A stretch of 64,000 nt of DNA from Lepidodermella squamata (Eukaryota; Animalia; Gastrotricha), in the NCBI GenBank assembly GCA_047495785.1, contig JBLDXI010000042.1, forward strand, positions 1,240,001-1,304,000, written 5' to 3'. Below are positions 1,242 through 34,397 of the stretch, piece by piece. Below the pieces are notes generated by a model. That model saw nothing but the letters and a program-made list of their open reading frames with translations. It searched no databases and was not told the DNA's origin. The translations under genes were made by a program, and so were the position numbers. The first letter of the stretch is position 1, and every line of letters starts with the position of its first letter.

Positions 1242-4200
1242 CGTTTTTTCGCTCTGTATTATTTTCTTTCATCGTTATGCTCTCGTTATCGACGTTTTCG
1301 CCATCAACAAAGTCGATTCAAGCAATCCCTGTCATTCAACTGTACTTTAATAAATTTTTTTCAAGAATTTTTTCAAACTTTGAAATTCCAAACGAGGGTC
1401 GTAGGTTGGCGCCCGGCCTCTCGTTTTTTCGCTCTGTATTATTTTCTTTCATCGTTATGCTCTCGTTATCGACGTTTTCGCCATCAACAAAGTCGATTCA
1501 AGCAATCCCTGTCATTCAACTGTACTTTAATAAATATTTTTCAAGAATTTTTTCAAACTTTGAAATTCCAAACGAGGGTCGTAGGTTGGCGCCCGGCCTC
1601 TCGTTTTTTCGCTCTGTATTATTTTCTTTCATCGTTATGCTCTCGTTATCGACGTTTTCGCCATCAACAAAGTCGATTCAAGCAATCCCTGTCATTTAGT
1701 TGTACTTTAATAAATTTTTTTCAAGAATTTTTTCAAACTTTGAAATTCCAAACGAGGGTCGTAGGTTGGTGCCCGGCCTCTCGTTTTTTCGCTCTGTATT
1801 ATTTTCTTTGATCGTTATGCTCTCGTTATCGACGTTTTCGCCATCAACAAAGTCGATTCAAGCAATCCCTGTCACTCAGTTGTACTTTAATAAATTTTTT
1901 TTAAGAATTTTTTCAAACTTTGAAATTCCAAACGAGGGTCGTAGGTTGGCGCCCGGCCTCTCGTTTTTTCGCTCTGTATTATTTTCTTTCATCGTTATGC
2001 TCTCGTTATCGACGTTTTCGCCATCAACAAAGTCGATTCAAGCAATCCCTGTCATTCAGTTGTACTTTAATAAATTTTTTTCAAGAATTTTTTCAAACTT
2101 TGAAATTCCAAACGAGGGTCGTAGGTTGGCGCCCGGCCTCTCGTTTTTTCGCTCTGTATTATTTTCTTTCATCGTTATGCTCTCGTTATCGACGTTTTCG
2201 CCATCAACAAAGTCGATTCAAGCAATCCCTGTCATTCAACTGTACTTTAATAAATTTTTTTCAAGAATTTTTTCAAACTTTGAAATTCCAAACGAGGGTC
2301 GTAGGTTGGTGCCCGGCCTCTCGTTTTTTCGCTCTGTATTATTTTCTTTCATCGTTATGCTCTCGTTATCGACGTTTTCGCCATCAACAAAGTCAATTCA
2401 AGCAATCCCTGTCATTCAGTTGTACTTTAATAAATTTTTTTTAAGAATTTTTTCAAACTTTGAAATTCCAAACGAGGGTCGTAGGTTGGTGCCCGGCCTC
2501 TCGTTTTTTCGCTCTGTATTATTTTCTTTCATCGTTATGCTCTCGTTATCGACGTTTTCGCCATCAACAAAGTCGATTCAAGCAATCCCTGTCATTTAGT
2601 TGTACTTTAATAAATTTTTTTCAAGAATTTTTTCAAACTTTGAAATTCCAAACGAGGGTCGTAGGTTGGTGCCCGGCCTCTCGTTTTTTCGCTCTGTATT
2701 ATTTTCTTTGATCGTTATGCTCTCGTTATCGACGTTTTCGCCATCAACAAAGTCGATTCAAGCAATCCCTGTCATTCAGTTGTACTTTAATAAATTTTTT
2801 TTAAGAATTTTTTCAAACTTTGAAATTCCAAACGAGGGTCGTAGGTTGGCGCCCGGCCTCTCGTTTTTTCGCTCTGTATTATTTTCTTTCATCGTTATGC
2901 TCTCGTTATCGACGTTTTCGCCATCAACAAAGTCGATTCAAGCAATCCCTGTCATTCAACTGTACTTTAATAAATTTTTTTCAAGAATTTTTTCAAACTT
3001 TGAAATTCCAAACGAGGGTCGTAGGTTGGTGCCCGGCCTCTCGTTTTTTCGCTCTGTATTATTTTCTTTCATCGTTATGCTCTCGTTATCGACGTTTTCG
3101 CCATCAACAAAGTCAATTCAAGCAATCCCTGTCATTCAGTTGTACTTTAATAAATTTTTTTTAAGAATTTTTTCAAACTTTGAAATTCCAAACGAGGGTC
3201 GTAGGTTGGTGCCCGGCCTCTCGTTTTTTCGCTCTGTATTATTTTCTTTCATCGTTATGCTCTCGTTATCGACGTTTTCGCCATCAACAAAGTCGATTCA
3301 AGCAATCCCTGTCATTTAGTTGTACTTTAATGAATTTTTTTCAAGAATTTTTTCAAACTTTGAAATTCCAAACGAGGGTCGTAGGTTGGTGCCCGGCCTC
3401 TCGTTTTTTCGCTCTGTATTATTTTCTTTGATCGTTATGCTCTCGTTATCGACGTTTTCGCCATCAACAAAGTCGATTCAAGCAATCCCTGTCATTCAAC
3501 TGTACTTTAATAAATTTTTTTTAAGAATTTTTTCAAACTTTGAAATTCCAAACGAGGGTCGTAGGTTGGCGCCCGGCCTCTCGTTTTTTCGCTCTGTATT
3601 ATTTTCTTTCATCGTTATGCTCTCGTTATCGACGTTTTCGCCATCAACAAAGTCGATTCAAGCAATCCCTGTCATTCAACTGTACTTTAATAAATTTTTT
3701 TCAAGAATTTTTTCAAACTTTGAAATTCCAAACGAGGGTCGTAGGTTGGCGCCCGGCCTCTCGTTTTTTCGCTCTGTATTATTTTCTTTCATCGTTATGC
3801 TCTCGTTATCGACGTTTTCGCCATCAACAAAGTCGATTCAAGCAATCCCTGTCATTCAGTTGTACTTTAATAAATTTTTTTCAAGAATTTTTTCAAACTT
3901 TGAAATTCCAAACGAGGGTCGTAGGTTGGCGCCCGGCCTCTCGTTTTTTCGCTCTGTATTATTTTCTTTCATCGTTATGCTCTCGTTATCGACGTTTTCG
4001 CCATCAACAAAGTCGATTCAAGCAATCCCTGTCATTTAGTTGTACTTTAATAAATTTTTTTTAAGAATTTTTTCAAACTTTGAAATTCCAAACGAGGGTC
4101 GTAGGTTGGTGCCCGGCCTCTCGTTTTTTCGCTCTGTATTATTTTCTTTCATCGTTATGCTCTCGTTATCGACGTTTTCGCCATCAACAAAGTCGATTCA

Positions 4201-4282
4201 AGCAATCCCTGTCATTCAGTTGTACTTTAATAAATTTTTTTCAAGAATTTTTTCAAACTTTGAAATTCCAAACGAAGGTCGT
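1242..4282. repeat. 180-bp tandem satellite, type A, ~17 monomers
   Basis: Exact 180-bp period (AACGAGGGTC at 1391, 1571 ... 4091; final variant at 4271). Confidence 0.98.
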
Positions 4283-4537
4283 TGTTTAAAATTTTGGAAT
4301 ATTGGAATTTTCAATTCTTCATTTGCATTTAGTTGTATTTTCATGTCTTTTCTTATGTTTACCAGCTTGCGAATCGAATGACCGAATGATGCACCTGTGA
4401 AATGGCTGAAACCTGTCAAATCAAATGGCTGAAAACGATTTCAAGACGTGAAATTCATGTGATTTTTGATTTTTCAAACTAGTCCAGCTTTGATTCTTTA
4501 TATTGTAATTATATTGTTCCAAACCCCATTTTCGCCG

Positions 4538-4832
4538 ACCCAGGCAGTAATAGGGTAGAGATGCCGTCTCAATGCTCGGCTATGCAGTTAAATAGCCAAC
4601 CGACGTTGGAATAGTCGGTATAAACTTCCACCGTCCCGGCTCAGACGGCGAAAACGACCACGTCTTGGTGAGACGGTAAAAAAAACTCCGACAAGGCAAG
4701 GTCGGAAAAAAACTTCCAAAATGTCCGCAGGGCTGAGCGACCAGCGCCCTCACTGTGATTCGTCACAAATAACAAGCTGGAAGGGAACCTATGACGATCT
4801 GTCAGGCATCTTCGGATCCGAGGTTTCTCCCC
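4538..4832 (+). ncRNA. Candidate structured RNA (or ssDNA) element upstream of the transposase ATG (unit 1)
   Basis: About 12 nested stems, e.g. TGCCGTCTC/GAGACGGTA enclosing GGCTAT/ATAGCC, ACCGAC/GTCGGT, CCGTC/GACGG and ACCA/TGGT; TCCGAC/GTCGGA; CTTCCA/TGGAAG enclosing AGGGC/GCCCT and TGTGA-TTCG-TCACA; GAACCT/AGGTTT enclosing TGAC/GTCA and ATC-TTCG-GAT. Confidence 0.55.
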
Positions 4833-4983
4833 GATATTTCAATCATTGATGTGCATTTGTAATTTCAATAAAATATTTTTCAAATTTCACAATATATTTT
4901 TTAATTGATAATTCGCATATGATGTTATTATTTATTTTCCTAGTTTTTTTATGATGAGAATTTTATGATTATGAACTGGAATC

Positions 4984-7900
4984 ATGGTGAAACCGCCTAA
5001 TTGGAAGCCAAAATCGAAGGGACCGCGTAAATGTTCCTTTTGCAAACGGAAACGTGTTCAAATCTCAACCCACTGCGGACTAGTCAATTGCCCTAAAGCT
5101 AAAGGGCAACACCATCCCAAGCCATGCATTAAGGTTCAAGCTCCACCTTCTCAGTCCAATTGTAAGTTTTCCTAATCAATCAGTTATATATGTTTCATCT
5201 GTTTTTACACAGCCACGTCGTGTTCGCATGCTGGCGAATCTTTATCGCTAGCTCCATCCTCACTCGCTGTTCAGAATACGTCTGAGCAGTCGTTGATATC
5301 TCAAGGCTTGTTCTTGTTATTCATCCTCAAATTGTATAAATTTGCGATAAAATTTCCCCATAGGTAGCAGCGCTGTTCTGACTGCTTCGGAGCAATTGTT
5401 GGCTTCTCAAGGTCAGTAATCTTTATTTTTCAACTATAACTTGACATGTAGCTGTGCTTTTCCAGCTGTTCCGGCTACCCGGGAAGATCCGCTGCCACCT
5501 TCGGGTTAGTTGTTAGATTGAGATTTCTTTCATGTCTTCAGCGAATACCACTAAGCTCTTTTAAGAATTGAAGAGATGTTAACATATGATTGTTATGTCA
5601 TTCAGTCTTGTCAAATAATATCTTTTCAGGCGCTTCTTTGAACGATCGGCAGGAATCTAACGTTGGAGCGCCTGCAACACGTCAGCCAGTAACTCAGCCA
5701 TCTTGTCCAGTATGCGGCGCAATAGGGAGGAAGTATCTGACCCACTGCGACAATGAGGAATGCCGGATTAGTGGCCGCGGGCATCACGCTAATCCCTGTT
5801 TCCAGTTGGAACGACCCGGGCTCCAGGCCGGTATAAATCTTGAGCAGCAACGTAAGTATTATCCACCTGGTAACAACCTTTCATAAATAATGATTCATTT
5901 AGCTGTGGCGTCCTCTGGAGCTGTTGCTGCTACGTCAGAACGATCGCTGCCATCTATTGGTTAGTTATTTTATTCAATAATGTGCTGCCTGGTGTTAACT
6001 AAAACTGCTGTTTGTTGCAGCTAGTGGTTGTTCTTCTAATGCACCTATTCTATGTGACAACTGCAAAAGACGATCGGTGCCCTTTTTCGACATCGACATT
6101 GCTGCAGTCGAAGAGCCGGTATCTGGACGCAGCTATGGTGCTCTAACAGTGCGGCATGTCTACGAAAATTGTTCTCTGTGCCGTTGTTGTCGTCACTATT
6201 TGCGGAACGGCGATGCTCGTTTTCCCGCCGGATGGCCAGCTCTTGTTTACAGCCTCTTCTTTGAAGCATCAAATAGACATCTAGCTCAGGCCCTCTCGCA
6301 CTGCATCTCGCCGACCATGAAACTCATGTGGAGCGAGGCCGACGGCTCACGAGTTATGCGCGACTCCCAGCCCTGGTTTGTCGACAAGACGCGCGAGCTT
6401 GCTGATTTCATGGCCAATATTTACAGAGACGCCGGTATGCTACCTACCGATATGATTATTCGAATTGAATTGTTTTTCAATGCAGGGGGATTCAGTTACG
6501 CGCTGAACACCTACCCAGTGCCCGACGTGATATGCCCTCAAGGCTGCCTCGCGTTCATGGAGAAGTGCCAGCTTATCCCGTACCACCATTTCATCCAACA
6601 TGTTACTGGCAGCAATTTCTTCGATTCTGACTTGCGCTGGTTCGAGTCAAGGCGACCCGACTGGCCGTGCAACCCAGTGCCTTTCCTCGCTTGGGATTTC
6701 GCTGCTGCAATGGTCATGGACGAGAACAAGGGTCTATGCATTCTTGCCTGCATTGACCACAGCAAGCCTGACTTGTTTTCCATGTACCTGCATTTGCCTG
6801 TGAATCCCGAGTTTGATCGATTTCAAGATCCACAGCAGACCGAAATCTATGCACCCGTGCACGTGCAGCCGAATTTCGTGAGAGGAGGGCGCGTCGGTCA
6901 GTCCAACGCATCAGTGCCAGTGACGAAGACTGTCGGCGATCCGTTTGGGGTTGGTAGTTTTACTCTGCGTGGTGCCCACTCGGCAAACCGCAAGCCTCTC
7001 AGCATCTATGACAGTGCCTTCAAACCCCACCTTCTGGCCTTGCGATACCGCCCAGAGATTCGCAACACAGCAATCAGCAGATTCGGCGAGGAACACGTGG
7101 CTAACGTTCTTGCTGATTTCGATCAGCACTGCCCAACTGCTGTTGTCAGAAGCCACGTCAAGGGTGGCACTTTCATCGAATTAGCTGACTCCTTCTTCAC
7201 CTGGGCTGTTCGCCGTAAAATCGCAACAGGTTAGCAAATTTTCTTTCCGATGTTGGTTACTTTAAATTTAACATTTAAATATTCCTTTAAATTTAACATT
7301 TAAATTAAATTTATGCGGTGTCTCAAATGTTCAGATTTTAGTTTACTTTTTCTTATTTCAGGTACTGATTCGTCGAAAAAAGGGAAAGCGCCTTCAGAAG
7401 GCCTGATCTTCAATCCAGTTCACCCGAATGATGATCATGGCTTAATCCCTTGGGCGTTCAAGTCGAGTCGAGGTGATAACCCCAGTCAGCTCCTCACGCT
7501 TGTCGCCAACGTGGCGTTGTTGTGCAGGCCTGTGTACCGTGCTTCGTTGTCCCACCTGGTGCTTGGCAGTCCCGATTTAGCACGCGTCGACATCGGTGAC
7601 TTGCTCAGTCATACAGTTTCGCTGCCGCGCCCGAAAACCCCTCGTACTCTGAAGCTGTCGCACCTGGCAAGGGACTTCTGGGCACTGACTGAACCCGAAA
7701 GTGATAGCGGATCTGACGATGACGAAGAATCCCCCGATGTCGTTATTCGGGCATTAACCTTGATTGGGAGAATTACTGCGCCGATTAATGATGTCGAGTT
7801 GTCGTTTGGTGGATCTGATCTTTTGACGATCAGGAAGGGGCAAATGATGGATGGCGAAGGAAGGAGTCTCAGAAGTCATGGTGAGTGTTTTATTCATATT

Positions 7901-10900
7901 TTGGCAGTTTTTGTTGCAATATTATACTTGTTTGGTGATATCCAGCATGGTCTTGGGCTCTAAATTTCCAAATTTCCAAGTTTTAATCACAAATTGAGGG
8001 CTACCATGTAAGATTTAATGACGTAAATCTTCAAAAATTGAGTAATTCCCAAATGCTTTTATTCAGAACTTCATAACGCATGTTTATTTCGTCTTTTTGT
8101 TTTACAGTGGGCAGGGTTCTGGTCATGCACGAAGGTCGATCTCAGCTGCTGACCGAATTCCAGTCTTCGCGTGAGCTGCTGCTGTGCCGTCCTGAAGGTG
8201 CCTTGCCGATCAAATGGCCTGCATTGCCTTTGTCGCTGAAAGCTGGGCATCACCTTCTACTTGCCGGCGTCAAGTTTGGCTCGAAATCCTACATCGTTTT
8301 TCGATGGTCACCTAGCTTCAGTGGCTGGTGGACAGTAGAGCCTAGCGGACGAGTGGTTCGTGGTGTCAGCGATCAGCACATGCGCTCTGACGTCCAATTT
8401 GCGATTTACGCTCTGCCTGGCAACCAGACCTTCTGCAATCAGGCCGTGCGTCAATCGCTAGGTGGCCAGAGCAAGGCGGCATGCGAAATGCACTACGACT
8501 CCGTCGAGTTCAACTTCACCCTGATGAAAGTGCCTGCCAAGCATAAGGTGAAGTGTTGCTTGCGATTGCCGGGAAGAGCTAATCAATGCGGCAAACCTGC
8601 TCAGTTGCGTTGTCCTGCTGGCTTGCAGAATGGCAGCATGTCGTGCAGTGTCGGCATCTGCCCGCGGTGCTTCAAAAAGCTTTCAGCGAACAGCATCACC
8701 AAGCTCTCAGCACCCGACTTTCTGCCTGATTTGCCTGAAGATGCTGAACTGCAACTGTCAGCTAGTAGGGTATCCAACTTGGAAGCTGAAGTTGATGAGG
8801 TCTTGCCCCAGCCTGAGCAGCTTGATTTGGCTGCTGATATTCAATTTCCTCGAGGTGATGTAGAGCCGCTCTACGACCCCACCAAGGGGATTCTCGCGAA
8901 GTACCTCTGGCAGCACCTGGGAATTCTGCAGCGAACCAGGCTTGCTTTCGATTCTGCCCAAAAGTCCTTTCTTCTGCAACAAATGGTTGGTTTTGGTGAT
9001 GCGCCGGCAACATCTGTTTTGTTCCCAGAAGGTGCCTTGTTCCCGTCGCTTTTCTATTACCAACGAGATGGTAGTGTTGTTGGTGCTTTGCCTTACCACC
9101 ACTACTCGTCGAACGCATCAGGCTATACTAGTGGAATCGGCTCGCTGTCTGATCATGTTAAAGTGAGACTCCGCAACTTCTTGTTGGCAACAAGCTGGTC
9201 TTTTGCGTCGCTCTACTTTTCCTTTGACATGAAGTTATCGGCGCAGCTGAACAGAAATAGCACGGCAATTTTCATGAAGCGTGGGACAGAAGGCCTGGCG
9301 GGTAAAGGCGCTGTTGGCTGGTCTCCTCCTGGCACTGCTTTGGAATACGAGGAGTTCGACAAGGAGTCGAGACTAAAGGAACTTGGCGCTCTAATCAAGC
9401 ATGAAGAATGGAAGTGGTTCGGGACAATTACCTGCAATGATACAGGTTGGGAAACGTTTTAGTATTAACTAGGTATTAGATCGGTCGTCGCTTCGAACCC
9501 AAGCTCTCGTTCAAGATTTCTCCAATGATTTCTATAATCCATAGGCTTTCTTTCTCGGCGTTGACGTCATCAGCGACATTGATTTAACCTGTCAATGTTG
9601 TTCATTTGTACTCATAGTTGTACCCATTGCAGCATTAGTCAATTTGACATTTTTATTTTCTGAGAAATATAATTTGCTTCCTTTTATTCCCAGGGACACC
9701 GGGCGTATGTGAAATCGTTAAGGCCCTCATGATAAACGCTCAAAGGCACCATGGTCCACGCCCTGTTCTGTCGAAGGCCGACTATCAGCGAACTTTTCGT
9801 CAGCGTCTGCTCCTTGTTTCAAGGCTTGACGAGACCGAGTACAAGCGGCTGTACTACGCCCATTTCATCCTCATCAGCATGGCTTGGCAACGAGTGCAGG
9901 AGCATCTGATCGAGTTCCTGAAGCGCACGAATGTAGTTGGCACGGTCACCACTATTTTCGTCAGGAACGAATTTCAGAGCGAATCACTCGTTGGAAACAA
10001 AAGTCATCTGCATATGGGCATTTCAGTACGCGAAAGCCGGGCAGAACTGATGGAGAAAGTTTGCTGTGATCCTCGTGAATTCTTCTCGGAGCGGTACGGC
10101 ACGTCATTCGACGAGCTTCAGCGCTTGAGGTTGGTCGAGAGCCGGGATCACTTCGAGCTGCTCAAGGAGGTCCATTACCCTTTCCAACGTCACGAATGCG
10201 AGAAAGCGTTTTGGAAATGTCAAGTTCCACGCGGCGAAGGAGGGGAAATGGTTTGCCGAGTTCGCCAGCACGGCGTCTCCAGCAGCGGCTATTTTGAAGA
10301 ATTCCGCAACCTGTACTCCGAGGATACCCTGAAAGAGCTGCAATCCCTAGACCTCGCCAGAGAAGTGCCCAATCCCACTGGCGACTTTGACTGGGAATTT
10401 CTGGCTGATCAGCTCAAGTCGGGCGTGTACCACTACGCGATCAAGCATCTCGAGAAGGGAGTGAAGTTCATTCCGCAAATCCCGATCATCGCGGCAATGA
10501 TGGGCGGCTCCACGAACTTCCAGATTTGCGATTCTCATTTTAGCGTATCTTACCTGACGAGCTACGTTGCCAGCTCCGACGCTCGCCCTGAAGCTTACGC
10601 TGCAACGACAGATGTTCCGGGCCAGGTCGTTGCTTTGTTCCCTGCTGGTTTTGAGCGAGGTCAAAAGCTTGCTAGTGTGCGGTGAGTTTTATCTTTTCAG
10701 CGTTTATCGACCTAAAAAAACTTGCATATTTTTCAGAAAAGTGATGGAGGCAAAGCTGAAACACTTTCGTCGTGAAAGCATGCAAAGCTTCATCTTCATC
10801 GCCTTGACGGAAGTTGCATGGTTCGCGTTGAGTTTTCCCTACACCATCACAAACGTCGGTTTCGTTCACATCAACACGCACCCTCCAGCGTCGCGGCTGA

Positions 10901-13900
10901 TGTTGTGGCGACCGAAGCAAGCAGTGAAACGTAGACTTCCAGGTATGATTAATCTTACAATTAGTATATTTTCACATAATATTTCCCCAAATAGGAACTG
11001 ATGTCGCTGCTGTTGACCCAAACTACAATCGTCGGGGCTTGCCACAGTGGCGCTTATTCACGGAAGCGGTCATTCGCCTCATAATGAAGTTGAAAGGCAC
11101 GAATCTGCACGCCGGCCCTGTCGAGAAATTCGAAATTCGGCCTCCCGAGGCTCGTATCTTTGCCTCACCTGCTATCTACCACGCGGTGTTCGTCATTGAC
11201 CGAAAAAACTGGCGACCATACAACCCGATGGCCGATCCTTACATCCGCTTTTTCGACGGTTTCAAGCGGGAGGTCCGAATCAACGATTGCAGTTTGCGCA
11301 TCGCGCTCGACTATCTGGCTCAGCAGGACCAATCCAATGCAGCCGTTCAAGCACTCACGGAAATTTTCGAACTCTTGGTCGAAGGCGATCCTGTCTATGT
11401 TGACCGGTAACGATCTTTACGTTTTTTTAATTTCCGGAATATTTCAAATGTACGCTGAACTAGGTACTTGCACGTCACAAATAAGGCGGCGATAATTCCA
11501 GTCCTATCCACCATCTCTCCGCTCAACCGCTTCAACTTCTTGTATCACGTTGTCATGACGTTTGGTCGAATCGAAGATGAGGCTACTACCTTTCCGGCTG
11601 GGCATCTCCGGGCGGCATTTGTTCGATCGGGGCTCATTCGGGTCAATCCTGAAGGCGAGCCGACCAACCTTCCTGCCGACGTGAGGTCTCTGAAGCGTCG
11701 CGTCATTCTCGAAATCTTCGCTTTCCTGCCAATCGGTGTCAAGAGATTCGATTTTTACGTCGCCACTCTGAAATCCATGTTCGAGCAGTTTTTCTTTGGC
11801 GATGGAGGCACCGACAATCTCTCGGCACTGACTGACTGGGATGCGATTGAACGGGAAGTTGACGAGGATATTGTCCGAGCGGAAGGAGAAATGAAGCGGT
11901 CTGTGGTTGAGGTGACGCATTCGCAGCTTGTCGGGAAATTGCCGCTACCACCGCTGTCGGATTTCACTGACGCTACATCGTGTCAACCTTTGGAATGGAT
12001 TCCGAGTCTTCAACGACAACCAGGTCAGTCGGACCAGTCTTTCCAGGAGCAGCAGGCGGCTCTGGCTTTCGGTATGAAGACACTCGAACGCTTCCGAAGC
12101 AGAGCTAGCTTCAAGCACATCGCACTGGTTGGTCCTCCTGGGGCTGGAAAGACAACGCTGGCGCAGATCCTTGCCATGGTTGCCGTTTCTAAGGGACTAC
12201 GAGTTGTCATTACTGCTTTGACCTCGGAGCGAGCACGAGTTCTTGGCGGTCGGCACATCCACTTGCTTTTTCCTTTGCCGGTTAAGCAAATACCGTACAA
12301 AAATGTAATGGCGTATGCTGACGGCTGCCTCAAGAATCTGTGTTTCAAGACTACGCCGTCTGTTGTCCTATATCGGGCTGACGTCTTCATCATCGAAGAA
12401 ATTGGGCTGGTCTCTGCTGAAACCCTGGAAATCTTGGACACAGTTATGAGGAGTCTTACAGGTAAGCAAACCAGCATTTAATTATTACTGGTATTTATAG
12501 TTTTCGTTAGGAGTCGATGCGAAAATGGGTGGCAAATTGATCATTGCTACCGGGGACTTTGCTCAGCTCGAGACGATCAATGGTGAGAGTTGATTTATTG
12601 CAATACTAACATGTATATTGTATTTGTTTTTTTTAATTATCCCAGGTCGATCCTTTTGGGAATCAACACAATTGTACCTCAGCTACGACGTCGCATTGTT
12701 GAAACATTTCGTTCGGGCTGCCACTGACCCGCTACTCCAGCGGGTGCTGTTGATTTTGCGGCAAGGCGTTCTTGACGAGATTGACCGGGACTTCATCCTC
12801 AAAGCTGTGACTAGAACGTGCAACTTTTACGACACTTGGGACAACGTTCCGTTCCTTGTCCAGCGGATCGTCCCAACAAGAGAAGCTGAACAAGAGGTTA
12901 GTTGGAAACGGAAAATTTTGGTGATCACTCTTGCCTTTCATTAATTGATCAGGTCATTCGGAAGTTCCTGCAAGACGCTAGTCTCAGTGGCAAGACTTTG
13001 AAAACAGCTCTATGCATCGACGAAGTAAACACGCGTGGTGCCTGGGAACCTCTTCACCGTCCCGAATGGAAAAAAGCTATCAACAAACAGTCACTCAAGC
13101 CCGAGAACTTAACGCTCTTTGTTGGTGCTGTGGTTGCTATGACCTACAATCACGTAGCGTCGAACCCGCAACACTCCTTCTCCCAAGGGCAGCTAGCTTT
13201 GGTGACGCAGTTGCCGGAAGACATGGCAGCACCGGATGCCAAAATTTCTGTCCGCTTGGTTCCTCCAGGGCTGCGTGACATTGCACCAGATGAGGCTTGG
13301 CCAGAAATAAGTGTGGGCCGGCATCGGGACGATAACGTTGTTGTTGGCGACAACAAAACGCACCTGCGTCGTGTTCAGTTTCCGCTGCGGCATTACATTG
13401 CCTCGACTATTCATCGTGAGTGCTAACCTTGTTTTTATATTCAAGTATATAAAAATGTTAATTGTTTTCAGGAATCATGGGTTCTACCTGCGAGAACGGC
13501 GTTGCGGCCAAGATTTCTTCCAACGAGAAGGTACGTATTGCGAATAATAACTGTCGATATTGATATGTTCAATGTACTGTAATGAAGGGCTACGTGCTAT
13601 GGGAACGGGCGCAGCTTGCTGTCATTCTCTCGCGGTGCCGTTCACTTGACCGTGTGTCATTTGTTGGCGAACGCGCAGACATCACTGTGGCCATCGAAAG
13701 GCTGTTGATGGCAGTCGATGAGCCATACGAGGCTATCGTCGCATCGCTGCAAACGCTGGACGTGCTGCCTACCTCAACAGTCGCCAGTAACTGGTCAGCC
13801 CGACGACAGCAGCAGGTCAGCGACCCCGACGAACTGCCCGACATCACGTTCCGCGTTTTACGAACAACTTCCGGGTTAGTCCACTTACTTATTTGGCGCT

Positions 13901-14949
13901 TTGTATAGTCAACTCACTAATTGCGTATGTCCCATTATATATCGAGTCTTGACAGTTCACATTTCTATAACCATTTTATTATATTTCAAAATAGAATAAG
14001 TCGAACGTTTTCAAGAAAATTTTTCTTATAGATCATTCACGATCGAGCAGCTTGGCGATGCTCAAACTTCCATCCCATTGTAAGTATGGCATTGTTCATC
14101 TGCTTTATATACTATTCAAAACTTCTTCATAGGCCTGCAACCGTTGACCAGGCAAGCTCCTCCGATGCGCCTGTTGCGCCTGTCCCACGGTTAGTATAAC
14201 CTATCAATTCCTTTTCATTGCTTAAAATTCTGCTCAATTTATCAGAGTGCCGACATTGTTGGACTTCTACCGCGTCGTCGGTCCTGATTTGTCGGAACGC
14301 GAGCCCAATGGCGTCGTCTATCAATTGGTGGAGGTGGCTCAGCCGTGGGCCAGCTACTTTGGCGAAACCGAGCAAGCGCCTCTACAGCGACTTTATGACC
14401 ACAATCACAGTAAATACAAGAGAGACTAAAAAAATCGAACTGCTAACATTTGATTTCAGATGCAGGGGCCGCGATGACTCGCGGCAAGCAATGGCATTTG
14501 TACGCCGTCGCTCGTGGCTTGCCTGATGACGAAACCAGGTTGAACCTGGAGAAAAGGTGCCAGGACCTTATTACAGCGCAACCTGAGCTTTTGCCGTGGC
14601 AAGTTAGGACCAAATTTGAGTCCTACGTGGACGACATCAACGCTCGCCTGCATGGGTCCACTGCTGTAATTCGTTACGGCGAGTTGGACGAGGCTAAGGT
14701 TCACCGCCTGCGTATGATCTCCTTGTGAGTCAGCTGATGGATGTCATTCTTTTTACTCAATCCTTTCACTTTTCAGCACGTCGACAATTAGAGTAGCACC
14801 GGCGCCACCGTCAGCGCAAGAAGAAGCAGGTGAACTAATCGACCAAGATCCGCCCCCAAAGCGGTAAATAGATTTAAGTTCACATTTGCTTGTAGCTTTT
14901 TACTATTATTTTCAGAATTCATCTCGCAAATAATTGTTCGCCGTCTTGA
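4984..14949 (+). CDS. Spliced RepHel transposase, ~2,680 aa: tandem Cys/His fingers + HUH Rep + PIF1-like helicase + C-terminal GIY-YIG nuclease (unit 1)
   Basis: 25 hand-assembled exons: 4984-5161, 5213-5305, 5364-5411, 5466-5504, 5630-5851, 5903-5959, 6021-6434, 6486-7229, 7362-7880, 8108-9445, 9694-10681, 10737-10942, 10995-11406, 11464-12461, 12511-12582, 12646-12896, 12953-13415, 13472-13530, 13588-13874, 14032-14079, 14133-14189, 14246-14409, 14460-14724, 14777-14863, 14916-14949. Total 8,043 nt, phases compatible at every junction, no internal stop. All introns GT-AG except intron 2 (GC-AG). Splicing restores helicase motifs split across exons (MGGKLIIATGDFAQL; TIHRIMGST). Confidence 0.85.
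5032..5799 (+). other. Two N-terminal Cys/His putative zinc fingers (5032-5127 and 5704-5799)
   Basis: CSFCKRKRVQISTHCGLVNCPKAKGQHHPKPC and CPVCGAIGRKYLTHCDNEECRISGRGHHANPC share the exact spacing C-x2-C-x8-THC-x4-C-x6-HH-x2-PC. Confidence 0.7.
9415..10580 (+). other. HUH (Y2) Rep endonuclease domain
   Basis: Motif 1 WFGTITCN (Helitron FxTxTCN); motif 2 VRNEFQ...NKSHLHMGI (EFQ...HUH); QRHEC; motif 3 NFQICDSHFSVSYLTSYVAS (YxxxY). The upstream EGALFPSLFY resembles the conserved pre-Rep E..FP.LFP segment. Confidence 0.85.
12110..13670 (+). other. PIF1-like SF1B helicase domain (divergent)
   Basis: Walker A GPPGAGKT (12131-12154), ALTSERARVLGGRHIHLLF, Walker B-like FIIEEIGLVS, MGGKLIIATGDFAQL, LKHFVRAATDP, RVQFPLRHYIASTIHRIMGST, AQLAVILSRCRSL, all in PIF1 order. 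Confidence 0.9.
14307..14560 (+). other. SLX1-like GIY-YIG endonuclease domain (split by intron 14410-14459)
   Basis: Spliced sequence NGVVYQLVEVAQPWASYFGETEQAPLQRLYDHNHNAGAAMTRGKQWHLYAVARGLPDDETRLNLEKR matches the GIY...YIG.T...R...HN...GA..T....W......G........E pattern of SLX1/UPF0213-type nucleases. Confidence 0.75.
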
Positions 14950-15011
14950 TGTTTCTGCCGATCTTCCGATAAATGAAATGTTCCAATTCAATGTTTTTCC
15001 TAGTAGTAGCC

Positions 15012-15017
15012 AATAAA
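15012..15017 (+). promoter_or_regulatory. Putative polyadenylation signal
   Basis: AATAAA about 60 nt after the predicted stop, followed by T-rich sequence; present in all units. Confidence 0.5.
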
Positions 15018-15437
15018 CGTATCGCACTTTTTCTAATAGTGTTTATTGAATCAGAGTTATCAGATCGACTTGACTTAATATGAATCAAATCGCCACGAAA
15101 CCGTAATTTTTCTGATCCTTGTGCTTCGTCCATTATATAATTTTTCTAAAAGATTACCTAACCTCATTGCCATGCTCTTGGCTCTGTGGCAACCGAACCA
15201 TATTCATCTCACAAGTTGGCACTATAGTTGCTTCCGGAACCCACCATAAAGATGACAGATCTTAGTTTCAAGTTTTTCCATTGCATCACCATTGCTAAAT
15301 CAAAATCCATCAAATAAAAATGCTTCCCTGCGTAAATCTATAATTTCAAATCTTAATCACGGAAAATAGGGTTTATATCAAATCAAATCAAACCCAAAGC
15401 ACTGATGAGAATATCAAATTTCAAATGTCATTAACAC

Positions 15438-15620
15438 TGGGGTGAGGGGGAGCCACCGTCCCCTCCAACGACGTGGAGGGGATCTCCAAGGGGTGGTTCG
15501 AGTCCTTACCCATTACCCAGGAGAGTGGAGAAAAAGAAAGAAAAGGCTAGCGCAGCGTAAGCCTTGTCGAACTCTCCTGGATGGGGGCGCGACTCTGGGA
15601 GTTCCGAAGGAACGCCAGTT
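15438..15620 (+). other. Downstream multi-hairpin block (also at 30436-30612, 45429-45607, 60604-60775)
   Basis: Nested stems GGGTGAGG/CCTTACCC, GAGCCACC/GGTGGTTC, TCCCCTCCA/TGGAGGGGA; then CCAGGAGAGT/ACTCTCCTGG enclosing AAGGCT/AGCCTT; then GTTCC-GAA-GGAAC. Contains the B-box-like GGTTCGAGTCC. Confidence 0.65.
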
Positions 15621-15949
15621 CCTTTACACGTGTTTTACACATACGCCGTAGATTACCACGAACGAAGTGAGATTTCATCCCAACAGGGGGGCCCGAGAAC
15701 GCGTTGGTTAACAGGACATTCTCCGATGAAGCCGCCCGATTTATGGTAGTATCCTGGACCCCTCAGGACCTCCCAGAAACTTTTTCAGCTCTAACGGACC
15801 TTCCGTTGATTTTCTAGAAATTAGGACGGTTTTTTCCTATTTTACCGTATTTTTTGGTCACGTGACCCGGAATGGGTAGTATATGAGGGGACAGTAGGAG
15901 GATATGATAAGGACACCAAAAAACTAACCACGCTAACCAGAGTATCCAA

Positions 15950-15992
15950 GCCAGCTGACAGGCTGGCCCCTCGCCCCTGGGGGAGAGGGGCC
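15950..15992. other. GC-rich double hairpin, candidate subterminal signal (in every unit and at 61107-61149)
   Basis: GCCAGC-6-GCTGGC overlapping GGCCCCTC...GAGGGGCC. All 43 nt are invariant in the otherwise diverged copy at 61107. Confidence 0.6.
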
Positions 15993-16407
15993 TACAATAA
16001 ATCAACAATGCTAGCTGGCGACCAAAGAGCAAACGACGAAAAGGCAATATACGTAAAAGTCAAGGTCAATTGAACAATTCTGCGGCGAATAAATTGTGCA
16101 TTTTCCATATACAACAATAGGTTTACATGTAATCGACAACGGAGAATCCGAATATGACGTTCATTTTGTTATGAAGCAATTATAACCCAATGATAGCCCC
16201 TCCAACTAATTTTTCTGTTCACTGCTATGGAGTTGGCATGGTTATATTTTTTATTAAATAACATAATGCAGTTCAAGTTTCAGGGCTCGAAGTTTTAAAG
16301 CACATTTTTAAGTGAGCGGTTCAATAACGCACTGTCTTATTTCCATATTCATATGCATGCGCAGAAACAAAAAAAAATAATAATAACAATAAAAAATTAA
16401 AAGAAAA

Positions 16408-16484
16408 TGTGTCGCGGCCGGGACTCGAACCCTCCATTAACTGCATTTCACAACGTTACACTGAAACCACTCGGCCACAACACA
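16408..16484 (-). pseudogene. tRNA-like / Pol III cassette (unit 2)
   Basis: Minus strand A box TGGCCGAGTGG, B box GGTTCGAGTCC, then TTTTCTTTT. Confidence 0.6.
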
Positions 16485-17199
16485 TCTGACATATCCATCG
16501 CAAATTAAATTTCAATTAAATATTCAACGAAATTATCAAAACAGTTTCCAGCGCCTTCCGGGAATCGGACGCGTCTCTATATAATTTATTCACTATATAA
16601 TTCGCTACGCAGTGGTTCGGAAGGCAGTGGTTCGATTGCTGCTCACATCACATTTTTCCTTCTCATTTTTTCTTCTTAAAATCAGATTTATTTCTGTTTA
16701 ATTTTTTTGCAGAGTGAGCAATAAAAAATAAACGTTTACCATTCACGTGAATCTTCATGAGTACAAAGTGCATGCCTGTCATATGGCCGACACGCGATTC
16801 AGCATCAGCTGTTTCACGGCGCAGCGGCGGCAACAGCAAGCAGACGGTTCGATCCGGTATTCAACCATCATTCACAACGATTTATTTCTCTTCAAAACAA
16901 CCTCTATTTCCCTAATCATTAGAATTACTTATGCTGCCAGCTCCTATCAATCTATCTTCCGCTCGAATCGATAACATTGTGACAATGTTGCTCTCTCAGG
17001 TTTGCTAGTATATTATTCCCAGTTCATATCACCATTCCCACTATAATTACAGCTACTGGATGAAATGGCGATTTCAACACTGTTGTCCACTTTGGTTTTC
17101 CATGGTCACTACTCCCTACCAGAAAGCGGTGAGTACATTATTTTCCTCATTCATTTTTTTTACTATTGTAAAATTTATTGATTTTTTCATTCATTAACA

Positions 17200-19158
17200 C
17201 GTTTTTTTTGCTCCCCAATATTTTCTTTCGTCGTTATGCTCCCGTATTCGACGTTTTCGCCATCAGCAACGTCGATTCCACTAATTCATGTCATTTAATT
17301 TTACCCTGATTTACTTTTTTCAAGAATTTTTTCAAACTTTGAAATTCCAAACCAAGGTCGTAGGTTGGTGCCCGACCTCTCATTTTTTCGCCCTCAAATA
17401 TTTTCTTTCATCGATATGCTCCCGTTCTCGACGTTTTCGCCATCAGCAACGTCGATTCCACTAATTCATGTCAATTAATTTTACCCTGATTTACTTTTTT
17501 CAAGAATTTTTTCAAACTTTGAAATTCCAAACCAAGGTCGTAGGTTGGTGCCCGACCTCTCATTTTTTCGCCCTCAAATATTTTCTTTCATCGATATGCT
17601 CCCGTTCTCGACGTTTTCGCCATCAGCAACGTCGATTCCACTAATTCATGTCAATTAATTTTACCCTGATTTACTTTTTTCAAGAATTTTTTCAAACTTT
17701 GAAATTCCAAACCAAGGTCGTAGGTTGGTGCCCGACCTCTCATTTTTTCGCCCTCAAATATTTTCTTTCATCGATATGCTCCCGTTCTCGACGTTTTCGC
17801 CATCAGCAACGTCGATTCCACTAATTCATGTCAATTAATTTTACCCTGATTTACTTTTTTCAAGAATTTTTTCAAACTTTGAAATTCCAAACCAAGGTCG
17901 TAGGTTGGTGCCCGACCTCTCATTTTTTCGCCCTCAAATATTTTCTTTCATCGATATGCTCCCGTTCTCGACGTTTTCGCCATCAGCAACGTCGATTCCA
18001 CTAATTCATGTCAATTAATTTTACCCTGATTTACTTTTTTCAAGAATTTTTTCTAACTTTGAAATTCCAAACCAAGGTCGTAGGTTGGTGCCCGACCTCT
18101 CATTTTTTCGCCCTCAAATATTTTCTTTCATCGATATGCTCCCGTTCTCGACGTTTTCGCCATCAGCAACGTCGATTCCACTAATTCATGTCAATTAATT
18201 TTACCCTGATTTACTTTTTTCAAGAATTTTTTCAAACTTTGAAATTCCAAACCAAGGTCGTAGGTTGGTGCCCGACCTCTCATTTTTTCGCCCTCAAATA
18301 TTTTCTTTCATCGATATGCTCCCGTTCTCGACGTTTTCGCCATCAGCAACGTCGATTCCACTAATTCATGTCAATTAATTTTACCCTGATTAACTTTTTT
18401 CAAGAATTTTTTCAAACTTTGAAATCCCAAACCAAGGTCGTAGGTTGGTGCCCGACCTCTCATTTTTCGCCCTCAAATATTTTCTTTCATCGATATGCTC
18501 CCGTTCTCGACGTTTTCGCCATCAGCAACGTCGATTCCACTAATTCATGTCAATTAATTTTACCCTGATTTACTTTTTTCAAGAATTTTTTCAAACTTTG
18601 AAATTCCAAACCAAGGTCGTAGGTTGGTGCCCGACCTCTCATTTTTTCGCCCTCAAATATTTTCTTTCATCGATATGCTCCCGTTCTCGACGTTTTCGCC
18701 ATCAGCAACGTCGATTCCACTAATTCATGTAAATTAATTCTACCCTGATTTACTTTTTTCAAGAATTTTTTCAAACTTTGAAATCCCAAACCAAGGTCGT
18801 AGGTTGGTGCCCGACCTCTCATTTTTTCGCCCTCAAATATTTTCTTTCATCGATATGCTCCCGTTCTCGACGTTTTCGCCATCAGCAACGTCGATTCCAC
18901 TAATTCATGTCAATTAATTTTACCCTGATTTACTTTTTTCAAGAATTTTTTCAAACTTTGAAATCCCAAACCAAGGTCGTAGGTTGGTGCCCGACCTCTC
19001 ATTTTTTCGCCCTCAAATATTTTCTTTCATCGATATGCTCCCGTTCTCGAAGTTTTCGCCATCAGCAACGTCGATTCCACTAATTCATGTCAATTAATTT
19101 TACCCTGATTTACTTTTTTCAAGAATTTTTTCAAACTTTGAAATTCCAAACGAAGGTC
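17200..19158. repeat. 180-bp tandem satellite, type B, ~11 monomers
   Basis: 180-bp period (one 179-bp monomer). About 84% identical to type A with no indels. Confidence 0.98.
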
Positions 19159-19404
19159 ATTTTTTTGAATTTTAGAATTTCGGAAATTTATATTAGCATT
19201 TCATTTTTTTTTATTTTTTCTCTTTTTTACCAGTTTGCGAATCGAATGACCGATGTTGCACATGCTGTAATCAAATGGCTGAAAACGATTTCAAGACGAA
19301 GTGATTTGTGATTTTTCAAACGTGCTACTTCATTTGAACGTTGTTTACCAGCTTTGCTGTATGATGCTTTTTAAATTATATTGTTCCAAACCCCATTTTC
19401 GCTG

Positions 19405-19699
19405 ACCCAGGCAGTAATAGGGTAGAGATGCCGTCTCAATGCCCGGCTATGCAGTTAAATAGCCAACCGACGTTGGAATAGTCGGTATAAACTTCCACCG
19501 TCCCGGCTCAGACGGCGAAAACGACCACGTCTTGGTGAGACGGTAAAAAAAACTCCGACAAGGCAAGGTCGGTAAAAAACTTCCAAAATGTCCGCAGGGC
19601 TGAGCGACCAGCGCCCTCACTGTGATTCGTCACAAATACTAAGCTGGAAGGGAACCTATGACGATCTGTCAGGCATCTTCGGATCCGAGGTTTCTCCCC
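19405..19699 (+). ncRNA. Candidate structured element (unit 2)
   Basis: About 5 substitutions versus unit 1 in and next to the block, almost all in unpaired linkers. Confidence 0.55.
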
Positions 19700-19858
19700 G
19701 ATATTTCAATTATTGATGTGCATTGGTAATTTCAATAAAATATGTTTTTCATTTCAATATATTTTTTTTAATTGATGTTCTTCATTCCATTCGCATATGG
19801 TGTTATTTTTTATTTATCTAGTTTTATGATGACAATTTTGTGATTATGAACTGGAATC

Positions 19859-22800
19859 ATGGTGAAACCGCCTAATTGGAAGCCAAAATCGAAGGGATCG
19901 CGTAAGTGTTCCTTTTGCAAACGGAAAGGTGTTCGAATCTCAACCCACTGCGGACTACTCAATTGCTCTAAAGCTAAAGGGCAACACCATCCCAAGCCGT
20001 GCATTAAGGTTCAACCTCCACAGTCCGCTTCTCAGTCCAATTGTATGTTTTCCTAATCAATCAGTTATATATGTTTCATCTGTTTTTACACAGCCACGTC
20101 GTGTTCGCATGTTGGCGAATCTTTATCGGTAGCTCCATCCTCACTCACTGTTCAGAATACGTCTCAGCAGTCGTTGATATCTCAAGGCTTGTTCTTGTTA
20201 TTCATCCTCAAATTGTATAAATTTGCGATAAAATTTCCCCATAGGTAGCGGCGCTGTTCTGACTGCTTCGGAGCAATTGTTGGATTCTCAAGGTCAGTAA
20301 TTTTTATTTCTCAACTATAACTTGACATGTGGCTGTGCCGTTCCAGCTGTTCCGGCTACCCGGGAAGATCCGCTGCCACCTCCGGGTTAGTTGTTAGATT
20401 GAGATTTATTTCATGTCTTGAGCGAATACCACTAAGCTCTTTTAAGAATTATAAGAATTGAAGAGGTGTTAACATATGATTGTTATGTCATTTAGTCTTG
20501 TCAAATAATATTTTCAGGCGCTTCTTTGAACGAACGGCAGGAATCTAGCGCGCCTGCAACACGTCAGCCAGTAACTCAGCCATCTTGTCCAGTATGCGGC
20601 GCAAAAGGCAGGAAGTATCTGACCCACTGCGACAATGAGGAATGCCGGATTAGTGGCCGCGGGCATCACGCTAATCCCTGTTTCCAGTTGGAACGACCCG
20701 GGCTACAGGCCGGTGTAAATCTTGAGCAGCAACGTAAGTATTATCCACCGGGTAACAACCTTTCATAAATAATGATTCATTTAGCTGTGGCGTCCTCTGG
20801 AGCTGTTGCTGCTACGTCACAACGGTCGCTGCCATCTATAGGTTAGTTATTTAATCAAGAATTGTGCTGCCTGGTGTTAACTAAAACTGCTGTTTGTTGC
20901 AGCTAGTGGTGGTTCTTCTAATGCACCTATTCTATGTGACAACTGCAGAAGACGATCGGTGCCCTTTTTCGACATCGACATTGCTGTCGTGGAAGAGCCG
21001 GTATCTGGACGCAGCTATGGTGCTCTAGGACTAAGGAAAGTCTATGAAAACTGCTCGTTATGCCGTTGTTGCCGTCACTATTTGCGCAACGGCGATGCTC
21101 GTTTTCCCGCCGGATGGCCAGCCCTTGTTTATAGCCTTTTCTTCAAAGCAGCGAATAGGCACCTAGCAGAGGCCCTCTCTAACTACATATCGCCGCTCAT
21201 GAAAATGATGTGGAGCGAGGTCGACGGCTCAAATGTTATGCGGGACTCGCAGCCGTGTTTCGTTGACAAGACACGTGATCTGGCTGATTTCATGGCCAAT
21301 ATCTACAAAGACGCAGGTATTCTATCAACCTACTAAATGAGTATACGAATGCAGTTTTTTTTTTAATTGCAGGAGGATTCAGTTACGCGCTAAACATGTA
21401 CCCAGTGCCCGACGTGATATGTCCGCAAGGTTGCCTCGCTTTCATGGAGAAGTGCCAGCTAATCCCGTACCATCATTTGATCCAACATGTCACTGGCAGC
21501 AATTTCTTCGATTCCGACTTGCGCTGGTTCGAGTCAAGGAGACCCGACTGGCCGTGCAACCCAGTGCCTTTCCTCGCTTGGGATTTCGCTGCTGCAATGG
21601 TCATGGACGAGACAAAGGGCCTATGCATCCTTGCCTGCATTGACCACAGCAAGCCGGACCTGTTTTCCATGTACCTGCATCTCCCTGCGAATCCCGAGTT
21701 CGACCGGTTCCACGATCCGCAGCAGACCGAAATCTATGCACCCGTGCACGTGCAGCCCAATTTCGTCAGAGGCGGGCGAGTCGGTCAGTCGAACGCATCA
21801 GTGCCAGTGACAAAAACTCTGGGTGATCAATTAGGTGTCGGCAGCTTTACATTGCGTGGTGCTCACTCGGCAAATCGCAAGGCTTTGAGCATGTACGCCA
21901 GCGCCTTTAAGCCACACCTTTTGGCCTTGCGATATCGTCCTGAGATTCGCAACACCGCGATCAGCAGATTTGGCGAGGAACACGTGGCTCACGTTCTTGC
22001 TGATTTTGATCAGCATTGCCCAACTGCTGTCGTGAGAAACCATGTCAAGGGTGGCACTTTCATCGAGCTAGCTGACTGTTACTTCACCTGGGCTATTCGC
22101 CGCAAAATCGCGACAGGTCAGTACATTTCATTCTTAATCTACTACTATAGATTAGACTCAACAGAATTAGCACTGCATTAATTTTGCTGATAGTGATAGC
22201 CTTGTAATCGGGCCCTGCACTGAATTTTAGATGCGTTTTGTCCAATATAAAATTCTCCAATATAAATGGTCAAAGAACGGATGTAGCAACTGTAGTAGAG
22301 TATCGCGCGGGATAACCACTGCAAATTATTATGTAGTGTACTTCGGGAGGATAAGATTAGGCCGATCGAACTGCTCCAAATTCTCGATATAATAAACAAA
22401 TATAGAGATACTAAGATTCAAGCGCATTAACAATTCATCATCGATTCCTACGAATTGTCTCATTTCGTCCTTCTTTATTTTAGGAAGTGATTCGTCGAAA
22501 AAAGGGAAAACACCTTCAGAAGCCGTGATCTTCAATCCGGTTCACCCGAACGATGATCATGGCTTAATCCCCTGGGCGTTCAAGTCGGGTCAAGGCGACA
22601 ACCCTAGTCAGCTCCTGACACTGGTTGCCAACGTCGTTTCGTTGTGCCGCCCTGTGTACCGTGCGGCGTTGAGTCATCTAGTGCTTGGCAGTCCCGATTT
22701 AACACGCGTCGACATCGGTGACTTGCTCAGTCATACTGTTTCGCTGCCGCGCCCGAAAACCCCTCGTACTCTGAATTTGTCGCATCTGGCAAGGGACTTC

Positions 22801-31399: not shown

Positions 31400-31476
31400 T
31401 GTGTCGCGGCCGGGACTCGAACCCTCCATTAACTGCATTTCACAACGTTACACTGAAACCACTCGGCCACAACACA
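31400..31476 (-). pseudogene. tRNA-like / Pol III cassette (unit 3)
   Basis: Same sequence as the unit 2 copy. Confidence 0.6.
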
Positions 31477-32191
31477 TCTGACATATCCATCGCAAATTAA
31501 ATTTCAATTAAATATTCAACGAAATTATCAAAACAGTTTCCAGCGCCTTCCGGGAATCGGACGCGTCTCTATATAATTTATTCACTATATAATTCGCTAC
31601 GCAGTGGTTCGGAAGGCAGTGGTTCGATTGCTGCTCACATCACATTTTTCCTTCTCATTTTTTCTTCTTAAAATCAGATTTATTTCTGTTTAATTTTTTT
31701 GCAGAGTGAGCAATAAAAAATAAACGTTTACCATTCACGTGAATCTTCATGAGTACAAAGTGCATGCCTGTCATATGGCCGACACGCGATTCAGCATCAG
31801 CTGTTTCACGGCGCAGCGGCGGCAACAGCAAGCAGACGGTTCGATCCGGTATTCAACCATCATTCACAACGATTTATTTCTCTTCAAAACAACCTCTATT
31901 TCCCTAATCATTAGAATTACTTATGCTGCCAGCTCCTATCAATCTATCTTCCGCTCGAATCGATAACATTGTGACAATGTTGCTCTCTCAGGTTTGCTAG
32001 TATATTATTCCCAGTTCATATCACCATTCCCACTATAATTACAGCTACTGGATGAAATGGCGATTTCAACACTGTTGTCCACTTTGGTTTTCCATGGTCA
32101 CTACTCCCTACCAGAAAGCGGTGAGTACATTATTTTCCTCATTCATTTTTTTTACTATTGTAAAATTTATTGATTTTTTCATTCATTAACA

Positions 32192-34151: not shown

Positions 34152-34397
34152 ATTTTTTTGAATTTTAGAATTTCGGAAATTTATATTAGCATTTCATTTT
34201 TTTTTATTTTTTCTCTTTTTTACCAGTTTGCGAATCGAATGACCGATGTTGCACATGCTGTAATCAAATGGCTGAAAACGATTTCAAGACGAAGTGATTT
34301 GTGATTTTTCAAACGTGCTACTTCATTTGAACGTTGTTTACCAGCTTTGCTGTATGATGCTTTTTAAATTATATTGTTCCAAACCCCATTTTCGCTG

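Follow-up and report, generated by a model that had tools for sequence, protein, structure and literature searches.

A Helitron-like element in tandem copies in the gastrotrich Lepidodermella squamata, with a predicted SLX1-type nuclease at the end of its transposase

How Helitrons choose their targets, and how integration is completed after single-strand transfer, is an open question. It is raised anew by a window of 64,000 nucleotides (the whole stretch of DNA that was analysed; contig JBLDXI010000042.1 of assembly GCA_047495785.1, forward-strand positions 1,240,001 to 1,304,000) from the gastrotrich Lepidodermella squamata, which contains four head-to-tail copies of a ~15-kb element with its genes spaced ~15 kb apart. 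The gene encodes a large transposase in which an HUH Rep, a PIF1-type helicase and a GIY-YIG nuclease domain are joined. With a probability of roughly 0.6, the element is read here as an autonomous, probably recently active rolling-circle transposon that would belong to a deep HLE2-allied lineage distinct from described families, would insert at the ends of related elements already resident and would use its GIY-YIG domain to cut branched products. The evidence comprises the junctions between copies, the conservation of the transposase, and arrays of relatives in a second assembly.

Tandem copies and the junction between them

An earlier note on this DNA had described a single element at 4538-15992. 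The gene was correctly recognised, the four tandem copies went unreported, and the span given cut off the 5' part of copy 1 and took in 400 nt of copy 2. The element is the whole ~15.0-kb unit, because two haplotype switches fix the head-to-tail junction. The 5' part of copy 1 precedes the window start, and the remainder is laid out as follows.

15585-30584, + strand: copy 2, the first complete element, ~14,992 bp
30585-45579, + strand: copy 3, ~14,995 bp
45580-60752, + strand: copy 4, ~15,173 bp, with one extra 180-bp unit
60753-61370, + strand: 5' end of a diverged related element, joined at the same junction as the copies

Each element carries, in order, a 5' structured end, Pol III-like boxes, a 180-bp array, an internal conserved block, the gene and 3' hairpins. 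Copies 2-4 are near-identical and differ at a handful of sites, and copy 1 is a mosaic relative to them, with ~88% identity in its 5' half and 98% in its 3' half. The change from the diverged type to the type of copies 2-4 is patchy and falls at 9686-11200, within the Rep region, which suggests gene conversion or recombination between subfamilies. The neighbour that follows copy 4 is 86.5% identical to the 5' end of copies 2-4 over 617 nt and is unrelated beyond that point, except for relatives of the 180-bp unit (63400-64000, 67-78% identity).

These differences place the boundary. In copy-1 numbering, copy 4 shows 1 difference from copies 2/3 in the 400 nt up to 15592 and then differs at 42/397 sites; copy 1 carries 6-7 substitutions and gaps relative to copies 2/3 before the junction and 0 in at least 1,600 nt after it, and its private variants stop at 15568. 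Two independent haplotype switches thus coincide in one 24-nt interval of a 15-kb unit (p 1e-12 and 5e-7), and the junction is therefore assigned to 15569-15592, with the following features around it.

15440-15592, + strand: 3' terminal region of copy 1, with two long hairpins; the inverted repeat of the 5' end sits in the right arm of the second, and CTGGATG follows that arm
15569-15592, + strand: head-to-tail junction interval; candidate cuts at ~15583 (after CTGGATG) or 15593/4
15593-15992, + strand: 5' terminal region of copy 2, with two hairpins, GTTCC-GAA-GGAAC (15601-15613) and a GC hairpin of 13 bp (15965-15992)

The neighbour that follows copy 4, 86% identical, has both 5' hairpins in unaltered form. 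The predicted fold of 15430-16000 is more stable than 100/100 shuffled sequences (z -3.2), and that of 15430-15520 reaches z -3.6. An asymmetric inverted repeat of 9-10 bp spans the junction, the left arm of the 5' hairpin being an inverted repeat of 3'-subterminal sequence. Terminal hairpins are present and no classical terminal inverted repeat or target-site duplication was found; a duplication at the junction would still be possible because the junction motif is common to both sides. The junction is G/C-rich in the window, as it is for three families of the assembly ERZ25074608 described below, and is neither of the T-T/C nor of the A-T kind, with no 5'-TC. More conserved bases come after a CTRR-like word near the 3' end, and the junctions, read directly, lack flanking telomeric repeats and a 3' CCAA. 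The hairpin at 15965-15992 together with CTAG at 16010 was considered as a canonical 3' end and rejected: the haplotype switches lie ~400 nt upstream, and the word is altered in the neighbour of copy 4.

The earlier note had also proposed densely paired blocks directly upstream and downstream of the gene, bracketing the element as origin and terminator or serving as RNA cofactors. Dense pairing was borne out downstream; upstream it is modest (4530-4840, z -1.7 to -1.8). The blocks do not bracket the element, since the junction falls inside the downstream block and the upstream block lies ~3.8 kb from the 5' end. An origin or terminator role is thus retained in part, for a downstream block that holds the termini of two adjacent elements, and is lost for the upstream block, which is internal. 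A cofactor role found no support: there was no Rfam match, and the blocks were not found near homologous genes.

The transposase and its place among Helitron-like elements

The transposase was modelled from genomic sequence and homolog alignment, and its features in copy 1 are the following.

4984-14949, + strand: transposase gene, 25 exons, 8,043 nt, 2,680 amino acids, no internal stop
6048-7455, + strand (residues ~222-630): family-wide Cys/His-rich N-terminal domain, with matches to 43 homologs
9415-9438, + strand: Rep motif 1 (WFGTITCN), aligned to motif 1 of Helraiser by the family profile
9963-10013, + strand: Rep motif 2 (R-x-EFQ ... GNKSHLH; E1310, H1322, H1324), from the alignment of homologs
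10551-10565, + strand: Rep motif 3 with Y1504 and Y1508 (Y2 type), from the family profile
12110-13644, + strand, exons 14-19: PIF1-type superfamily 1B helicase (Pfam PIF1 E 2e-4 on exon 14)
14310-14587, + strand, exons 22-23: SLX1-like GIY-YIG domain (Y2523, Y2535, G2537, R2546, H2550, N2551, E2583)

The introns comprise 23 of the GT-AG type and one GC-AG intron (5306-5363), the latter kept in 4/4 copies. Every splice site and the open frame are preserved in all four copies, with exon indels in multiples of 3, so that the single intact 25-exon frame of ~2,680 residues proposed earlier stands. Homologs encoded in single open reading frames are colinear with the spliced model over a stretch that begins at residue ~222 and reaches the GIY-YIG domain. 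Between copies 1 and 2 the ratio of nonsynonymous to synonymous substitution rates (dN/dS) is 0.03-0.21 over residues 213-2430, about 0.1, and where the two copy types diverge (dS 0.3-0.5) it is 0.07-0.21; the protein has therefore been under purifying selection. No such signal was detected in the first 212, low-complexity residues in this copy comparison.

Rep motifs 1-3, the PIF1 motifs and the C-terminal GIY-YIG domain reported before were all located, the last with its residues complete. The N-terminal domain has conserved Cys and His and a predicted fold with a mean local confidence (pLDDT) of 76.5, and matched nothing in Pfam, PDB or BFVD in sequence and predicted-structure searches. In Rep motif 2 the residues E, Q, G, H and H are invariant among 16 homologs. 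Helitron_like_N was matched by 13 of 16 homologs. A PDB search with the family profile returned Helraiser (7lcc) as the best match (E 6e-27), its alignment spanning Rep motifs 1-3 and the helicase, followed by PIF1 helicases and then Slx1. The features of the Helitron-like superfamily, a Y2 HUH Rep with motifs 1-3 and a PIF1 helicase C-terminal to it, are thus present.

The GIY-YIG exons taken singly are too short for a Pfam match and gave none. Once spliced, the domain scores 34.9 bits (E 7e-13) against a homolog profile built without the window protein, and it keeps the Y, Y-x-G, R, H, N and E residues of the SLX1 type; it is accordingly classed, from its residues, as an SLX1-type domain predicted to be catalytically complete. 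Many homolog tails exceed the Pfam cut-off for GIY-YIG. The domain of homolog P0008, as modelled (pLDDT 90), has a fold for which Slx1 and HIGLE are matches with E values from 5e-7 to 4e-5, as against 0.8-2 for I-TevI or UvrC. The likeness to Slx1 and HIGLE extends to fold and catalytic residues; unlike them, the window protein shows no RING domain after the GIY-YIG and is fused to a transposase. A role on branched DNA would fit the SLX1 match. Of the representatives, 35 have a complete tail beyond helicase motif VI; the GIY-YIG profile matches 33 of these, and 17 keep all of the Y, G, R, H and E positions; P0014, P0033, P0029, P0042, P0059, P0107 and P0020 retain the fold with the catalytic residues lost and offer natural controls.

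A search with the Rep exon among 1.84 billion representatives yielded 122 proteins of 23-42% identity, many of 2,200-2,800 amino acids, with homology over the full length in the long ones. No exact or close copy of the window protein was found in the databases. In many homologs the Rep-helicase-GIY-YIG fusion is a single intronless open reading frame, and some carry an OTU domain. Named hosts are the ostracod Cyprideis torosa and the tunicate Styela clava, and the remaining homologs, where inspected, lie on contigs with eukaryote-like gene structure. None of the contigs had a human appearance. A viral origin was rejected: no family members were found in viral contigs (IMG/VR), where the matches are stand-alone PIF1 helicases. 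Canonical HLE1-type RepHel genes do occur there on giant-virus contigs from metagenome-assembled genomes (L050 3859-8862 and L060); they are either contamination from the host or Helitrons that giant viruses carry.

In the helicase tree, inferred by a quick method with approximate likelihood-ratio (SH-aLRT) support alone, a midpoint root and one hand-picked representative per subfamily, the family lies on one side of a long, strongly supported branch from HLE1-type and viral PIF1 proteins, and the window protein pairs with that of Cyprideis. The Rep tree (146 columns) also sets the family apart from HLE1; support for the family as such is weak there (79). The references in both were 18-20 mostly metagenomic HLE1-type proteins, the trees being built without HLE2 and Paramecium sequences. 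Placement relative to HLE2 was therefore judged by diagnostics taken from PMC4067079 and PMC11417382. An HLE2-type arginine precedes motif 2 (FVR in the window, W/F/Y-x-R in homologs), and the RGLP form of HLE1 motif 2 is not seen in the window protein. RGSP before HUH occurs in none of the homologs listed, nearly all having a longer GN-K/L-P-type loop instead. DUF6570 gave no match at E up to 1 in the pre-Rep region of six homologs or in the window exons. A C-terminal apurinic/apyrimidinic (AP) endonuclease was not found, the GIY-YIG standing in its place. From these characters the family appears HLE2-allied, not a demonstrated member and lacking several of the published diagnostics, and it probably forms a new deep clade within the Helitron-like elements. 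The distinct rolling-circle lineage with a second nuclease that the earlier note had suggested is in this way upheld, by 122 homologs and a branch of their own relative to HLE1 and viral PIF1.

Similarities with Helitron2/HLE2, especially FoHeli1-2 (PMC3627910, PMC5148889, PMC11417382), include the Y2 Rep with PIF1, the arginine before motif 2, hairpins at both ends, a short asymmetric inverted repeat and the OTU domain of some homologs. The GAA-loop 5' hairpin closely resembles the 5' end of FoHeli2, and the inverted repeat of the 5' end lies inside the 3' hairpin as in FoHeli1/2 (PMC5148889). Unlike HLE2, the window family lacks DUF6570, RGSP and a TT junction, its motif 2 is mostly EFQ-x(2-7)-GN-K/L-P-H-x-H, and it has a larger protein, an N-terminal Cys/His domain, an SLX1-type nuclease and mixed arrays. 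Helentrons (PMC4067079) share a second nuclease C-terminal to the helicase, satellites and short non-autonomous partners, but theirs is an AP endonuclease, of unknown purpose (PMC8788227), and not a GIY-YIG, and their T-rich target is absent here. HLE1 and Helraiser (PDB 7lcc) share the RepHel core and the CTRR-like word near the 3' end; the family differs in its separate branch in both trees and in having neither a 5'-TC start nor an A-T target.

Two further comparisons were made from published descriptions. HelenSM92, an HLE2 family of Sphagnum magellanicum, is likewise a Helitron-like element with a GIY-YIG, described as a capture, and has TT sites (PMC11417382). Third-clade Helitrons of Paramecium (PMC13085455) likewise have a very long open reading frame, satellites between it and the ends, purifying selection and a strict target preference with orientation, and fall outside HLE1 and HLE2; unlike the window family they target telomeric repeats, and that paper makes no mention of GIY-YIG. 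Tandem Helitrons, satellite-bearing Helentrons, the target-specific Paramecium clade and one GIY-YIG capture are hence already known. A RepHel plus SLX1-type clade and its end-targeted mixed arrays were not found described in the searchable literature, which does not include Repbase or Dfam. The novelty that the earlier note left undecided accordingly holds for the clade within that literature and not for the GIY-YIG addition as such, given HelenSM92; for GIY-YIG additions to algal Helitron2 elements, which it had raised, the literature search gave no support.

Arrays of relatives and the proposed insertion mechanism

The termini of relatives were read in assembly ERZ25074608. One family, P0027, is a 25.8-kb element on four contigs (about 98.6-99.4% identity) with an invariant 3' end carrying the terminal motif GCTAGGTGGTC. 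Its left flank ends in a variant of the motif at 3/3 loci with the left end in view, and on the right come four distinct and diverged sequences that are homologous to the 5' end of the element itself, each beginning with a small hairpin of differing sequence. These P0027 relatives have the small 5' hairpin only, without a clear inverted repeat. Two further autonomous elements, P0128 (31% identical to P0027) and P0103, lie within arrays whose 1.3-2 kb units meet at GCTAGGTG, on the same strand as the gene. P0128 occupies such a motif-joined array despite a truncated nuclease (seen in the cluster representative P0017). A fourth family, P0053, is tandemly repeated with no recognisable motif, and in the tandem family of locus L071 a junction was sought and not located. 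Near-identical copies thus have different neighbours, 70-86% identical, that abut them at one and the same motif. In the window, CTGGATG (15,577-15,583) may correspond to the motif of these junctions, in which case the cut would lie near 15,583.

Several side features accompany these arrays. At L070 (929-26632) and L072 (678-22454) arrays of non-coding 1.3-2 kb units, some common to both loci, are linked by the motif of the autonomous elements, and the units are probable non-autonomous partners. A core conserved close to the 5' ends of relatives, at L067 (860-960 and 26620-26700), is reminiscent of the one in DINE-1/HINE-type non-autonomous Helentrons. The 25.8-kb relative (L066-L069) has a second open reading frame of up to 547 amino acids about 750-1000 nt after the transposase gene; it has no Pfam match and is intact in L068, and the other copies have it split or in a shorter form.

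Repeated insertion at resident ends is the simplest account of these arrays, because identical elements sit between different old neighbours, unlike what a single concatemer would give. The most likely reading is rolling-circle transposition directed to the ends of resident elements, in which the nuclease would process branched intermediates. In the account of Helraiser work given in PMC13085455, a left-end nick is followed by unwinding and a second nick past the right-end hairpin, giving a circular intermediate. By analogy, Rep would nick the 5' end, the helicase would peel off one strand, a nick at the 3' end would close the circle and Rep would join it to the target. The preferred target would be a CTRGRTG-like motif at the terminus of a related element already in residence: if Rep recognises its own end junction, a resident end would be a strand-transfer substrate and insertion would be exactly end to end. 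New copies would land precisely between old ones, in a gene-safe site, and arrays would build up. The GIY-YIG, taking the place of the AP endonuclease of Helentrons, would cut whatever flap, loop or junction single-strand transfer leaves behind or, alternatively, nick the opposite strand and so prime second-strand synthesis. Unequal exchange would homogenise neighbours and yield mosaics such as copy 1.

Several observations weigh against this scheme. No empty site, transcript or circle was seen; terminus data on relatives come from one assembly, whose motif the window junction resembles only loosely; several short homologous contigs have no array; and copies 2-4 could equally be products of a concatemer or of unequal crossing-over. 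The nuclease site is decayed in about half of the homologs, so the nuclease would not be essential across the lineage. Considering also the truncated nuclease of the array-embedded family, it is probably helpful and not the source of target choice.

The same decay is what an ordinary divergent Helitron2-type element with a passenger GIY-YIG would show, its arrays being concatemers and products of unequal crossing-over in heterochromatin with no preference for ends. The Helitron2-like termini, the HLE2-type arginine before motif 2, the capture seen in HelenSM92 and the known tandem Helitron insertions (PMC5148889, PMC11934779) all speak for it. It is nevertheless considered unlikely: concatemers give identical neighbours, but neighbours only 70-86% identical adjoin at the same motif; the domain keeps its place across a clade of ~25-35% identity and is intact in 17 representatives; and DUF6570, the RGSP motif and a TT junction are missing. 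A nuclease that itself chose the site, as a sequence-specific nickase or endonuclease recognising the junction motif in homing-like or recombination-based insertion (compare Penelope and homing GIY-YIG), would explain why a short conserved motif stands at every junction in the ERZ25074608 host, and sequence-preferring cleavage is known for other GIY-YIG enzymes. This is improbable given a fold far closer to structure-specific Slx1 than to I-TevI, the lack of a DNA-binding module after the GIY-YIG and the array around the nuclease-truncated P0128, and recognition by Rep of its own end motif would suffice.

That the four-copy array is partly an assembly artefact, or an immobile repeat maintained (domesticated) by the host, deserves very little credence. 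Copies 2-4 do differ at only a handful of sites, and purifying selection would fit a host function as well; against this, the copies have private variants and different satellite numbers, the flanking units are of distinct types, and near-identical relatives lie on four separate contigs in another host.

Internal sequences and wider meaning

The remaining features lie inside the element.

4508-4845, + strand: conserved GC-rich non-coding block, internal, ending ~140 nt before the ATG; not a terminus
17217-19158, no strand assigned: 180-bp tandem array of 10.8 units in the 5' part of copy 2, between 5' end and gene
1242-4282, 32209-34151 and 47204-49326: other 180-bp arrays
16407-16485, - strand: Pol III-like unit of ~76 nt with A box, B box, paired ends and a T run, read from the sequence

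Between copies 1 and 2 the block at 4508-4845 shows 6 differences in 338 nt (1.8%) vs 40/320 in its flanks (12.5%; p 2e-8), and it is marginally more conserved than introns 1-6 (17 differences in 398, 4.3%; p 0.06). A regulatory RNA or a protein-binding role is possible. By eye it shows recurring CCGAC/GTCGG hairpins that might pair downstream through their loops, and its plausible splice sites would make 4543-4857 an exon of the 5' untranslated region. Searches for the blocks near homologous genes (blastn, nhmmer) found none, and Rfam and ARAGORN returned nothing credible on the blocks and homologous loci, with no known ribozyme, internal ribosome entry site or tRNA.

The Pol III-like unit has a fold z of -3.0, is conserved in the copy-1 type at about 147-227 and had no ARAGORN or Rfam matches; its layout, by eye, resembles that of a vault or VA-type RNA. 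More B-box-like words stand near 16565 (-), 16847 (+) and 15496 (+). Exon-like blocks with splice signals (16714-16854, 16925-17000 and 17051-17128) are better conserved between types than their spacers and hold, by eye, a short open reading frame of ~41 codons with a stop common to the types. Relatives of the 180-bp unit were also seen by eye in intron 10 of copy 1 (9490-9620). Insertion of the gene region into a host repeat composed of satellite and Pol III-like unit was rejected, both travelling with the 5' end of the element.

The clade is probably under-annotated because its Helitron_like_N scores are weak and DUF6570 is lacking. A wider proposal, tentative and held with less than even confidence, is that of a third major Helitron lineage, spread over several animal groups and overlooked by existing classifiers. 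It would have acquired an SLX1-type resolvase domain early and would insert specifically into the ends of its kin, building long mixed arrays and spreading internal satellites; it would possibly be the animal branch of the target-specific Paramecium clade. A branched-DNA nuclease fused independently and lineage-wide at the position of the Helentron AP endonuclease would suggest that both kinds of element need a second cut; with its natural nuclease-dead relatives, this intact and apparently young element makes that need testable. If true, insertion at resident ends would be a little-described form of Helitron targeting and a route to satellite-rich heterochromatic arrays.

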